Below, piece after piece: positions 21,555 to 58,150 of a stretch of DNA of 64,000 nucleotides. The stretch's first letter is position 1. Every line of letters begins with the position of its first letter. This stretch comes from Eutreptiella sp. 'Long Island Sound 2002'. Taxonomy: Eukaryota > Protista > Euglenida. A program made the position numbers and the translations under genes. The notes beneath the pieces are model-generated. The model was not told the origin of the DNA. It worked only from the letters and a program-made list of their open reading frames with translations, and searched no databases. The stretch covers positions 190,650,001-190,714,000 of the forward strand of contig OZ038378.1 in NCBI GenBank assembly GCA_964036045.1, in the 5' to 3' direction.

Positions 21555-21928
21555 TCAGATCCGGTACCGTAGCACCCACCACAGCACCACGCACTTCAGC
21601 GTCTGCAGTATGCAGGCGTCCAGCAGCAGCCCGATGAGGGACGACAGTGCCTGCCATCCGGCGGTGGCGCGGGGCAGGAAAAGGGCAATCACTACTGTGC
21701 AGCCCATGGCCACCGCCACATGCACCGCCAGCAGCACCCAATTGCAGGCGTAAGGCAGGGCCAGCCCGCACCAGCCCTCGTTAATGTGGCACCGGGTATG
21801 CGCCTGCCGCACTGCCGAGCAGCCCTCAACCTTCAGAGGGGCCTGGGCGCAGTGCAAAGTGTTGTGCTCGAGCGTCACATTGTGGCACCCGGCGAGTTTG
21901 ATGCCGATGGGAGCCCGCAGGTGCAGCC
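21555..21928 (-). CDS. Terminal exon: end of beta-helix plus two TM helices
   Basis: cattcccag|GLHLRAPIGIKLAGCHNVTLEHNTLHC...WCGLALPYACNWVLLAVHVAVAMGCTVVIALF...WQALSSLIGLLLDACILQTLKCVVLWWVLRYRI*; starts in phase 1. Confidence 0.85.
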
Positions 21929-57900: not shown

Positions 57901-58150
57901 AGCGACAGCAGCATGAGCACAGGGAACACAATGGCCCCCGAGATCAGCCCATGGATGACGGCCCAGACGGCCGTCGTCGCGGGGGGGATCAGACACGGGA
58001 CAGCGAACAGGCACATGATGTGCGTGAACACAACCGTCCAGCCCTGGGAGAGAGACTGGTGGCGCATGCCCGCAAAGGGCCAGGAGATCCAGGGGTTGTA
58101 TTGGCCGAGGACTTGCAGGAAGCTGAGCGCGTCCATGGGATGCAGAGCGC
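21555..58150 (-). CDS. Polycystin-1 (PKD1)-like membrane protein: TM2-TM3, long loop with parallel beta-helix, TM4-TM5; 5' end not resolved
   Basis: Phase-compatible exon chain: 58150-57801, 55646-55485, 53555-53400, 52063-51856, 49923-49857, 48602-48386, [47814-47727, 46303-46152], 45278-45161, 44119-44007, 41545(or 41577)-41418, 39836-39452, 37969-37798, 36161-35984, 26877-26603, 26418-26305, 21928-21555. About 1000-1085 codons with no internal stop. The 44007-to-41.5k junction is unresolved. Confidence 0.72.
23480..24780. mobile_element. Non-coding transposon-like intronic insertion
   Basis: A/T-tract-rich block (aaaaatcgcgaaaaatgaaaattcatgaaatccgattt...) with no credible ORF. Its ends are not defined. 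Confidence 0.3.
24900..25420 (-). mobile_element. Possible piggyBac-like transposase C-terminal remnant
   Basis: KYRYYCESCTFPLL resembles the T.Y.C..C..PLC Cys-rich tail of piggyBac transposases. No TTAA or terminal inverted repeat was found. Confidence 0.25.
26305..26418 (-). CDS. Exon of PKD1-like gene (beta-helix rung)
   Basis: ttgttgcag|GLTLDVAQGETVLIEAPQMSDKHSVGLFVVGARALTIK|gtctga; phase 1-1, 114 nt. Confidence 0.85.
26603..26877 (-). CDS. Exon of PKD1-like gene (RTASVQG repeat plus beta-helix N-cap)
   Basis: cctttgcag|(RTASVQG)x4 SSVQAQPAILHVYP...YTLDQALDQAKKWDTIIMHQGRYPSFVINNPPT|gtttgc; phase 2-1. Confidence 0.8.
28402..28670 (+). repeat. (CACCA)n pentamer block, left
   Basis: Direct reading; carries internal variants caccgcactgcaccgcattg and gcacagtacagcacagcacagcaccgcagagcac. 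Confidence 0.95.
28671..28950 (+). repeat. Three imperfect 81-95-bp tandem units leading into the satellite
   Basis: gacca.ccc.ctgggc..gactccc.gtcccc.caggcc.gtg.gcccggttc at about 28671, 28766 and 28848. Confidence 0.8.
28950..35575. repeat. 47-bp hairpin-forming tandem satellite (~140 copies), intronic
   Basis: Unit GGCAGTGAGGCAGTGCATTGCAGGAGTTGCACTGCCCACTGCCCCCA. The 47-aa (3x47 nt) periodicity of the translated ORFs confirms the unit length. Confidence 0.97.
35695..35923 (+). repeat. (CACCA)n pentamer block, right
   Basis: Same orientation and the same internal variant signature as 28402-28670. Confidence 0.95.
35984..36161 (-). CDS. Exon of PKD1-like gene
   Basis: ctcgcgcag|AESPRSTRQSHP...PQAPQVPW|gtatgc; phase 1-2, bridging 37798 and 26877. 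Confidence 0.65.
37798..37969 (-). CDS. Exon of PKD1-like gene
   Basis: cctctccag|SLPPSTTAWGSMYYDVVDLVDEQFKGRLQ...SLTA|gtcatt; phase 0-1. Confidence 0.8.
38810..39360. repeat. Diverged ~280-bp tandem duplication
   Basis: gggccctggacagtcacccg...tttccgcgtt.gcggagcccag.agttgg occurs at about 38855-38975 and 39135-39255. Confidence 0.75.
39452..39836 (-). CDS. Exon of PKD1-like gene
   Basis: cttcgcag|RSHYDDPLFDPDATLATLMSDSGYF...DMCGSE|gtgtgc; phase 2-0, 385 nt. Confidence 0.8.
40382..40503. repeat. (GT)n microsatellite followed by (GC)n
   Basis: Direct reading. Confidence 0.98.
41418..41577 (-). CDS. Exon of PKD1-like gene (5' boundary uncertain)
   Basis: WVAHYARTMPPVDLDFEHEWAKQYMDPQLESGWVPPGVPPQH|gtgtgt; ends in phase 2, matching 39836. 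Confidence 0.7.
44007..44119 (-). CDS. Exon of PKD1-like gene
   Basis: ctccacag|VSEDHEEYPKLLQLWREAVHICKHDRDYIMAAVMFTE|gtgagg; phase 1-0. Confidence 0.85.
45161..45278 (-). CDS. Exon of PKD1-like gene
   Basis: tctcacag|YYRDLLHLQLDLEAVKPP...DLMKAV|gtgtgc; phase 0-1. Confidence 0.8.
45470..45660 (+). repeat. Dispersed ~190-bp repeat D (second copy at 50135-50330)
   Basis: Shared accgcctgtggagaa.gca..ccgggcactacac..caaagtttcagatcatccag.gatacatccgttt. Confidence 0.85.
46152..46303 (-). CDS. Probable exon of PKD1-like gene
   Basis: tttttgcctgaccacag|ECPMRGRIATDEDAWWKPEVDVDSLL...PAGG|gtgagt; phase 1-0, so it needs the 47814-47727 exon to keep frame. Confidence 0.6.
47727..47814 (-). CDS. Probable exon of PKD1-like gene
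   Basis: gtccag|YCAWSARRLTAMLLLTDCTQCPQPQCSAA|gtaccc; phase 0-1. An alternative in-frame acceptor lies at 47823. Confidence 0.45.
48386..48602 (-). CDS. Exon of PKD1-like gene (helical region)
   Basis: ttccgcag|KAASLIRTTVPQIKRDLEVHEFSTSSWLVGINRLRKGELMAALGVFRSTLIELNAVMD...PWAQ|gtctgc; phase 2-0. Confidence 0.85.
49857..49923 (-). CDS. Exon of PKD1-like gene with GC donor
   Basis: cctgcag|STLSGLQLLIHAYQVSVTTAI|gcatgc; phase 1-2, bridging 51856 and 48602. Confidence 0.6.
51165..51260 (+). repeat. Dispersed repeat E (second copy at 54120-54215)
   Basis: ccaaaaatggcc.gac.aga.tttccc.attgtaaattt.cgtt.tttcccac.at.gtcactttggt is shared by both copies. Confidence 0.8.
51856..52063 (-). CDS. Exon of PKD1-like gene
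   Basis: gtgcacag|ESTELPPKKEDIVS...FTLAQLQVMASAELRK|gtgtgc; phase 0-1. Confidence 0.8.
53400..53555 (-). CDS. Exon of PKD1-like gene (low complexity)
   Basis: cttcgcag|ESGGDTGAADG...DGAPKVQ|gtacgc; phase 0-0. Confidence 0.75.
55485..55646 (-). CDS. Exon of PKD1-like gene (low complexity)
   Basis: ttgtacag|SPSVREKESQPEVAG...PLAPP|gtatgc; phase 0-0. Confidence 0.7.
57400..57672. repeat. (CA)n and (TCAC)n microsatellites
   Basis: Direct reading. Confidence 0.95.
57801..58150 (-). CDS. Exon of PKD1-like gene encoding two TM helices
   Basis: ctgttcag|ALHPMDALSFLQVLGQYNPWISWPFAG...WTVVFTHIMCLFAVPCL...VWAVIHGLISGAIVFPVLMLLSLVWYCC...DAPE|gtgtgt; phase 1-0. Confidence 0.88.

Follow-up and report, generated by a model that had tools for sequence, protein, structure and literature searches.

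Receptors of related design

The closest described systems are the proteins of the PKD1 family, namely PKD1, PKDREJ, PKD1L1-3 and the sea urchin REJ proteins. In these proteins a REJ domain comes first, then a GPS right before the first transmembrane helix (TM1), and then two helix hairpins, TM2-TM3 and TM4-TM5, with a long loop between them. To our knowledge, little is understood of what the first five TM helices of polycystin-1 (PC1) and the cytoplasmic loop between its TM3 and TM4 do, and we know of no study of this module other than fused to the channel-like half of the protein. The euglenid receptor described here shares all of these parts with the family, and its predicted topology is equal. 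However, it is without the PLAT domain after TM1, the TM6-11 channel-like block, the TOP domain and the C-terminal coiled-coil tail. It also differs in having a folded beta-helix in the TM3-TM4 loop, in the lack of detectable TM sequence similarity and in its euglenid host. Some sea urchin members of the PKD1 family have fewer than 11 TM helices and some have no PLAT (PMC1934368).

Two other groups invite comparison. The adhesion GPCRs share with the new receptor a large mucin-like ectodomain that ends in a GAIN/GPS autoproteolysis site beside the first TM helix, but the new receptor has five TM helices (arranged 1+2+2) and not a 7-TM bundle. The beta-helix proteins (Pel9A, PL6 alginate lyases, DUF1565, NosD and the XylC N-terminal domain) are like the new family in having an N-terminal cap followed by PbH1-like rungs, and the shared cap motif is a strand and then a helix of the 'TLxxAlxxA..GdTIxLxxGxY' type. 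Unlike those proteins, the new family has a short helix, which lies inside the loop of a membrane protein, is fused to a TM helix without a linker and is predicted to be cytoplasmic.

The gene in the window

The window is the whole stretch of 64,000 nucleotides that was analysed. Its region 21555-58150, on the minus strand, is very probably the 3' half of one euglenid gene of at least 75 kb, which would encode a PKD1/REJ-family receptor with an unusual C-terminal module. Stop-free segments of the minus strand show the codon signature of the genome (GC1 about 0.62-0.68, GC2 0.39-0.51 and GC3 0.77-0.87), and they lie at 57852-58145, 48359-48589, 43926-44111, 39437-39829, 37847-37936, 26613-26786, 26258-26407 and 21558-21926. 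The features of the region, in the order in which the gene is read, are as follows.

57801..58150, minus strand: TM2-TM3 exon, internal, with a pre-TM2 motif, TM2, a short loop, TM3 and then basic AKRK (periodicity score 26.3)
48359..48589, minus strand: coding-like helical exon with approximate borders (periodicity score 22.5)
43926..44111, minus strand: exon carrying a conserved helical motif, W-(R/K)-x-x-V ... (D/N)-Y-(I/V)-x-A-A-x-x-F (periodicity score 19.7)
41432..41587, minus strand: exon core that holds the family motif FG(K/R)xW..(H/Y)Y.....FExEW, recognised by homology
39437..39837, minus strand: acidic, Pro-rich linker exon, probably disordered (periodicity 21.4; canonical AG acceptor on the 5' side)
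37847..37936, minus strand: short coding-like segment, a possible exon (periodicity score 11.5 only)
28943..35574, no strand: 47-bp satellite in 141 copies (Tandem Repeats Finder), in the long intron that separates exon A from the linker exons
26603..26931, minus strand: exon A, a low-complexity GRTASVQ repeat linker and then the beta-helix N-terminal cap (LHVYPV ... TLDQALDQAKKWDTIIMHQGRYP ... NNPPTG)
26305..26418, minus strand: exon B, beta-helix rungs (GT-AG borders and frame read)
21558..21928, minus strand: exon C, the last beta-helix rungs (NVTLEHNTLH ...), TM4 at once, a 7-residue loop, TM5 and 7 residues (read in the sequence)
21450..21557, minus strand: TGA stop (21555-21557) and the first part of the 3' UTR

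The splice sites of the first exon in the window can be read directly (AG at 58152-58151, exon 58150..57801, GT at 57800-57799), and the end coordinate 58150 given by an earlier, sequence-only reading of this DNA is thus precisely a splice acceptor site. Exon A ends at 26603 with a GT donor at 26602; its 5' border is approximate, and the frame is open up to 27149. The A|B|C joints, with borders read in the sequence, preserve the frame. Runs of (CACCA)n and (CACAC)n lie on either side of the satellite, at 28402-28670 and 35696-35924. Most introns of Euglena are non-conventional (PMC12501133), and so a chain of GT-AG introns drawn from sequence alone is unreliable. Six exons of the window are supported by homology and three more by codon periodicity only. 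A count of the Euglena spliced-leader sequence gives 5,458 for the assembly and 0 for the control.

Four sequencing runs were compared with the locus; three of them are DNA and one, an estuary metatranscriptome, is RNA. With the exception of one 41-nt piece, the RNA contigs (5.9 kb compared) are confined to exon A and to exon C together with its UTR. They are colinear with exon A over 26726-26931, lie on exon C at 21632-21877 and are colinear across 21450-21622, continuing past 21450. The 41-nt piece lies in the A-B intron with two mismatches, and its contig is otherwise mostly non-matching. No read or contig of the RNA run crosses a splice junction, and therefore the linkage of the exons at this locus is drawn from the paralogs.

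The ectodomain upstream of the window

The exons for TM1, GPS and REJ lie 0.2-33 kb past the end of the window, also on the minus strand. The GPS exon matches Pfam PF01825 with 28.6 bits (cut-off 22.5; E 2e-6) and has an intact HLT site (C...C..HLTDF). In this gene the REJ exon barely reaches the PF02010 cut-off of 25, with 25.4 bits (E 6.5e-6) over profile positions 72-125. A second REJ fragment scores 13.2 bits at profile positions 349-421, and so the two fragments are in profile order. The REJ exon also matches the REJ exon of a paralogous gene, R (BLASTP 6e-4). The TM1 exon is at window-equivalent 64208-64360, 2.4 kb downstream of the GPS exon. These upstream exons bear out the earlier description of the protein as polycystin-1-like.

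The same reading had suggested looking upstream for REJ, GPS and PLAT exons; the first two are there, but no PLAT is. The stretch from TM1 (64.2 kb) to TM2 (58.15 kb) has no coding-like segment. The TM1-TM2 linker in the paralogs R, S, T and U has about 50 residues and lies inside one exon. PF01477 (PLAT) had no match in the whole assembly in a search whose controls were silent as well. The protein was also called truncated, which holds for its C-terminal side but not for its N-terminal side, since the ectodomain is present outside the window.

A gene family in the genome

Six exons of the window have counterparts, in identical order, in genes R, S, T and U. The TM2-TM3 exon matches the TM2-3 region of T (BLASTP E 4e-4) and the R+S alignment (hhalign E 0.022) in the expected register. 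The exon at 44 kb matches R (BLASTP E 9e-5) and S (E 9e-4), and the one at 41.5 kb matches R+S (hhalign E 3.1e-7, probability 93%) and S (tblastn 2.5e-5); a profile of the latter (A7) detects this exon plus nine other loci. Exon A matches R+S (hhalign E 4.5e-6), and the cap profile (A5) finds exon A itself at E 3.3e-26 and 35 places in the genome. For exon B the values are E 0.0026 (hhalign), 0.001 (BLASTP against U) and 1.3e-7 (A5), and the TM5 motif of exon C matches R+S (E 0.0042) and U (E 0.037). Several of these matches are weak taken singly (E 0.004-0.04). The exon at 48359..48589 has no Pfam match and no significant paralog match (BLASTP against T and U, E 4-6). Acidic linkers like the one at 39437..39837 occupy the equivalent place in T and R.

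Gene U (C3:157863543-157873880) has all of the parts in one ORF of 3,446 aa, that is, REJ (37.4 bits), GPS (22.2 bits), TM1, TM2-TM3, a helical region, the beta-helix, TM4-TM5 and the stop. In gene T, one ORF spans the helical motifs, linker and beta-helix cap. REJ and cap matches are paired on one strand at at least 12 loci. The analysis shows the parts, their order and the sharing of this order across a family. The loop-beta-helix architecture pointed out earlier is present, and a literature search found no paper on a REJ/GPS/5-TM receptor with a beta-helix in a loop; however, it is not unique to this locus, since at least 12 loci carry it.

These paralogs bear on whether the region contains one gene or two. 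Two adjacent genes would consist of one with REJ, GPS and TM1-3 that ends after the helical and acidic region near 37.8-39.4 kb, and a second from 27.1 to 21.5 kb with the beta-helix and the C-terminal TM hairpin. The two parts are indeed set apart by about 10 kb without coding signal, in which the 6.6-kb satellite lies. The RNA contig at 26726-26931 extends about 140 nt upstream of the periodic stretch of exon A and has an ATG in frame, and the coding signal at 39.4 kb nearly reaches an in-frame stop. However, good GT donors precede that stop, and the extension of the RNA contig is explained by the disordered linker that the family normally has directly before the cap. In addition, the motif order is repeated in the paralogs, T and U join the helical motif, linker and cap in one ORF, and the family motif and the cap are paired on one strand at at least eight loci. 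On this comparison we reject the two-gene model, which we consider very improbable, in favor of a single gene whose parts follow the order in T and U.

It is also very improbable that this copy of the family has lost its function and is decaying. Its introns are very long and satellite-filled, it is the most intron-split member of the family seen and a 195-bp fragment of exon C is copied elsewhere in the genome, all of which one could expect of such a copy. However, the exons supported by homology are all open with strong GC3 periodicity, the A|B|C joints are in frame, the GPS cleavage site is intact and RNA-derived contigs lie on exons.

A word search with the ORF of T or the GPS-to-end region of U found no outside relatives, a weak search given its length limits and the splitting of genes by introns. 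Exon C was searched by words, in metagenome contigs and by full HMMER against 1.84 billion representatives; the sole match, a 62-aa ORF on a genomic contig, was rejected as a paralogous gene, being the copy of the 195-bp fragment. The TM2-3 exon matched only generic single-pass membrane proteins in the ESM atlas.

The membrane helices and the C-terminal end

The sequence-only reading placed two TM helices at each end of the chain. Hydropathy agrees, with hairpins at 57.8-58.15 kb and 21.56-21.78 kb on the minus strand and Kyte-Doolittle peaks of 1.93 (TM2), 2.27 (TM3), 2.55 (TM4) and 2.04 (TM5); AlphaFold likewise models residues 51-83 and 87-121 of exon C as a helical hairpin. With TM1, there are five hydrophobic spans arranged 1+2+2 in the window gene and in U.

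The absence of a channel block was also correctly read. The frame stops seven codons past TM5, the TGA lies inside a colinear RNA-derived contig, and the minus strand downstream of the stop has no coding signal. None of the 51 matches of PKD_channel (PF08016) in the genome is near the window locus or R, S, T and U, and so the window gene has no PKD-channel block; it has no PLAT or C-terminal tail either. The genome encodes many PKD2-type channels.

The helices were also compared with those of PC1. Searches with phmmer and hmmsearch, using single exons, the 1,256-aa exon of T, a two-member R+S profile (A4) and four-member profiles of TM2-3 and TM4-5 (A8 and A9), gave no PC1 match at E<=10 in all PDB chain sequences, among which a PC1 chain is presumed to be. 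They thus gave no confirmation of the motif likenesses to human PC1 TM2-5 that the sequence-only reading had listed. No TM exon or TM profile was an exception, there is no PLAT between TM1 and TM2, and TM hairpins are simple and readily look alike. These results would fit a PKD1-type REJ-GPS ectodomain joined to five TM helices that arose within euglenids and have no relation to PC1 TM1-5, in which case the similar number and spacing of the helices would be convergent. However, the GPS stands directly in front of TM1, and the TM2-3 and TM4-5 hairpins, both tight, are set apart by a long loop, an arrangement that repeats the N-terminal TM module of PC1 in count and topology. The conserved H..W/ALQRV before TM2 and L-Q-P/T-L-K/R in TM5 also resemble what we take to be PC1 motifs, which is a lead only. 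We give convergence somewhat less than an even chance.

Basic residues occur after TM1, TM3 and TM5 and before TM4. With this pattern, the ectodomain outside and three helices before the loop, topology rules predict that the loop and its beta-helix face the cytoplasm.

The beta-helix in the TM3-TM4 loop

The loop contains a short right-handed beta-helix of about 140-170 residues, which consists of an N-cap and about five rungs and is like those of DUF1565 and Pel9A. Seven of the nine matches of the family profile (A10) to the PDB are beta-helix proteins, the best being XylC (E 0.0011). VIA gives Z 5.0-6.3 to alginate lyase, pectin methylesterase and Pel9A, and an atlas shape search gives TM 0.52-0.62 with DUF1565/Pel9A/NosD clusters. 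The ESM features of exon C all point toward beta-helix families. Foldseek against the PDB returned weak rows only (E>=0.6), mostly beta-helix proteins. The AlphaFold model of the beta-helix is of a paralog's exon, with a mean pLDDT of 64.5. Pfam gave nothing useful on 19 ORFs of the window and matched no beta-helix model there; its best beta-helix match was DUF1565 on the uninterrupted helix of U (11.8 bits, cut-off 20.3; E 0.15). The family profile and the fold searches agree with the earlier placing of a beta-helix between two TM hairpins.

A possible mode of action and its meaning

The proposed protein would begin upstream of the window with the REJ domain, a GAIN-like helical region, the GPS (its His-Leu|Thr site intact) and TM1. 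In the window it would continue with the tight TM2-TM3 hairpin, the long loop (helical motifs, an acidic disordered linker and the short right-handed beta-helix), the linkerless TM4-TM5 hairpin and the stop seven residues on. By analogy with PC1 and adhesion GPCRs, the GPS may be cleaved and the tethered pair retained. Force or a ligand acting on the ectodomain would move the 5-TM bundle, and the beta-helix, rigid and welded to TM4, could then offer a docking surface for partners such as the cytoskeleton or PKD2-type channels. Since there is no C-terminal tail, the cytoplasmic loop would be the only possible output. Our tentative suggestion, for which we see roughly one chance in a few, is that these genes represent a euglenid clade of PKD1/REJ receptors whose first five TM helices form a stand-alone signalling unit, with a cytoplasmic beta-helix clamped between TM hairpins as its output. 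CRISPR knock-ins work in Euglena (PMC12501133).

The family extends PKD1-type receptors to euglenids. A family that has REJ, GPS and five TM helices, but not PLAT, the channel half or the tail, would reveal what this module does alone, and it would be unusual for a beta-helix fold to be used on the cytoplasmic side of a membrane receptor. If the five helices do stand alone, TM1-5 of polycystin-1 would be an old, self-sufficient unit to which the channel-like half was joined only in other lineages, and a surface mechanoreceptor would have recruited a pectate-lyase-type fold as a domain for signalling or scaffolding inside the cell.

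The receptor gene and its extent

The exons were located by scanning for stop-free segments with the codon signature of real exons in this genome (GC1 about 0.65, GC2 about 0.45 and GC3 about 0.8). A row of such coding-like segments occupies the minus strand from 21.5 to 58.2 kb of the window, and the scan found nothing comparable on that strand from 58.2 to 64 kb. The sequence-only reading had ended a truncated polycystin-1-like (PC1) protein at 58150, and this is indeed the first base of the TM2-TM3 exon, as set by its acceptor. Plain GT-AG introns separate the last three exons (A, B and C), and the frame is kept. 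As that reading had it, there is a TM pair at each end: two hydrophobic spans in the first in-window exon and two in exon C, the latter forming a helical hairpin in the AlphaFold model.

Exons of the receptor gene (window or, past 64 kb, window-equivalent coordinates)
5' end 58150, minus: TM2-TM3 exon, first in the window; good acceptor AG at 58152-58151, GT at 57800
3' end 26603, minus: exon A, linker and beta-helix cap; GT-AG border, frame
26305-26418, minus: exon B, rungs; GT-AG borders, frame
21558-21928, minus: exon C, last rungs and TM4-TM5; GT-AG border, frame; TGA at 21555-21557
64208-64360, same strand: TM1 exon
66751-67149, same strand: GPS exon; Pfam 28.6 bits, intact HLT
about 75.3 kb, same strand: GAIN-like helical exon
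82.2-82.5 kb, same strand: REJ exon; 13.2 bits, profile positions 349-421
96.6-97.0 kb, same strand: REJ exon; 25.4 bits, profile positions 72-125

Since TM1, GPS, GAIN-like and REJ exons continue past its end, the window holds the 3' half of a gene that is at least 75 kb long. Thus, the protein is truncated on its C-terminal side only; the N-terminal parts lie outside the window. The upstream search found REJ and GPS, and PLAT was without a match in the genome profile search, a weak negative because the controls of that search were equally silent. PKD1-family members that lack PLAT exist among the sea urchin REJ proteins (PMC1934368).

The introns contain a perfect (TG)56 microsatellite (40382-40493) and, in the gap from 37.8 to 27 kb, a 47-bp satellite of 141 copies (28943-35574, 6.6 kb) flanked by (CACCA)n and (CACAC)n runs, the whole block covering 28402-35924. 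Downstream of the receptor 3' end, plus-strand coding-like segments at 296-442, 2492-2596 and 4475-4771 suggest another gene on that strand.

Paralogs and the one-gene question

Four paralogous genes in the same assembly (G000) bear on whether these exons form one gene. Gene R lies on the chromosome of the window gene at a distance of 11 Mb. It carries a REJ domain (31.4 bits) together with a weak GPS motif, and its downstream exons match those of the window in identical order. The others are S (C22:34.95 Mb), T (C8:58.52 Mb) and U (C3:157.86 Mb).

Matches of window exons to the paralogs
TM2-TM3 exon: T, BLASTP E 4e-4; R+S, hhalign in the correct register, E 0.022
44.0 kb exon: R, E 9e-5; S, E 9e-4
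41.5 kb exon: R+S, E 3.1e-7, 93% probability
Exon A: R+S, E 4.5e-6
Exon B: R+S, E 0.0026; U, E 0.001
Exon C TM5 motif: R+S, E 0.0042; U, E 0.037

Several parts that are apart in the window are joined in the paralogs. Both helical motifs lie within one exon of gene R. In gene T, one ORF holds the helical motifs, an acidic linker and the beta-helix cap, and one 1,256-aa exon holds REJ-like sequence, GPS and TM1-3. Gene U is a single 3,446-aa ORF that spans the whole chain: a mucin-like stalk, REJ (37.4 bits), GPS (22.2 bits), TM1, TM2-TM3, a Pro/Ala-rich linker, helical motifs, a beta-helix of about 140 residues and TM4-TM5, with the stop 10 residues further on. These joint ORFs and exons support the assignment of the window exons to one gene. 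The gene T intron between the cap exon and the TM4-5 exon contains a retrotransposon-like block (G000:C8:58544287-58552320) with long ORFs and, judged by eye, reverse-transcriptase/endonuclease-like sequence.

Contigs of one estuary metatranscriptome cover 21450-21622, 21632-21877 and 26726-26931; none shows a splice joint, and in the 5.9 kb compared no intron is covered save by one 41-nt piece. The third contig reaches past the codon-periodic stretch of exon A on its upstream side, which had raised the prospect of two separate genes. That reading was set aside after the paralog comparison, and a single gene is preferred; members of the family normally have a disordered linker immediately ahead of the cap, which accounts for the contig. 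The estuary RNA libraries (runs X1-X3) contain stretches identical to the receptor gene, and therefore this organism, or a strain very close to it, was active in the samples.

The beta-helix

The predicted beta-helix between the TM hairpins held up in several comparisons. The family profile, of seven rows from five family members (three rows being window exons), matched XylC best (E 0.0011), and seven of its nine matches are beta-helix proteins. In VIA, the matches to alginate lyase, pectin methylesterase, PL6 lyase and Pel9A had Z 5.0-6.3, and those to DUF1565, Pel9A-like and NosD clusters in the atlas shape search had TM 0.52-0.62. The ESM features of exon C point to beta-helix families only, at a weak score (0.78), and the AlphaFold model of the gene S cap exon (pLDDT 64.5) shows a strand followed by a helix and further strands, as in an N-cap. 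No Pfam model reached its cut-off; Foldseek returned no significant row, and nearly all of its weak rows are beta-helix enzymes. Window exons were searched and folded individually.

Known relatives and family size

Pfam matched none of the window ORFs. The TM2-3 and TM4-5 exons, searched singly, matched no PDB chain sequence at E<=10, and their profiles matched no PC1 chain; a PC1 chain was presumably among the sequences searched. Word searches with the gene T ORF and with gene U from its GPS to its end found no relatives outside this genome, a weak negative. For exon C, the word search, the metagenome contigs and a full HMMER pass (1.84 billion representatives) gave a single 62-aa ORF (P0001), which was rejected as a relative: it arose from a prokaryote-style gene call on a 195-bp piece of exon C copied to another place in the genome. 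This copy (window 21645-21839, 95% identical) occurs at G000:C8:50115470-50115682 (L002) and in an ENA contig (L006:9974-10168), with no other gene part alongside. We found no paper on a receptor design with a beta-helix in the loop. Among the sea urchin REJ proteins, PKD1-family members with 1-11 TM helices exist (PMC1934368).

The genome contains at least 55 REJ and at least 51 PKD_channel matches, none of the latter near the window gene or its paralogs. The cap HMM matched 35 places, and at least 12 loci have a REJ match paired with a cap match on the same strand. At G000:C13:60053023-60057618, one 10,524-aa ORF combines a cap match with a REJ match (E 5e-26) and is probably the largest family member. 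The assembly's strongest REJ matches (E 1e-40 to 1e-53) come from small unplaced contigs (e.g., C1202:37058-38347, C701:13007-14302, C1632 and C1191), where they lie within giant ORFs of 3,000-7,000 aa; these belong to a distinct and far more canonical REJ subfamily, or are possibly foreign DNA.

A sequence that we take to be the E. gracilis spliced leader occurs 5,458 times in the 2.28-Gb assembly, as compared with 0 for the control, on which ground the genome was assigned to Euglena. The 24-mer (about 5,460 copies) is scattered over the chromosomes on both strands, at a copy number far above that expected from a tandem array of SL-RNA genes; the dispersed copies may mark SL-RNA genes or retroposed SL-carrying transcripts.

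Proposed topology

There are basic residues after TM1, TM3 and TM5 and before TM4. Because the GPS would be outside and three helices precede the loop, we infer that the loop, together with its beta-helix, should face the cytoplasm. As there is no C-terminal tail, the loop would be the sole cytoplasmic output of the receptor.
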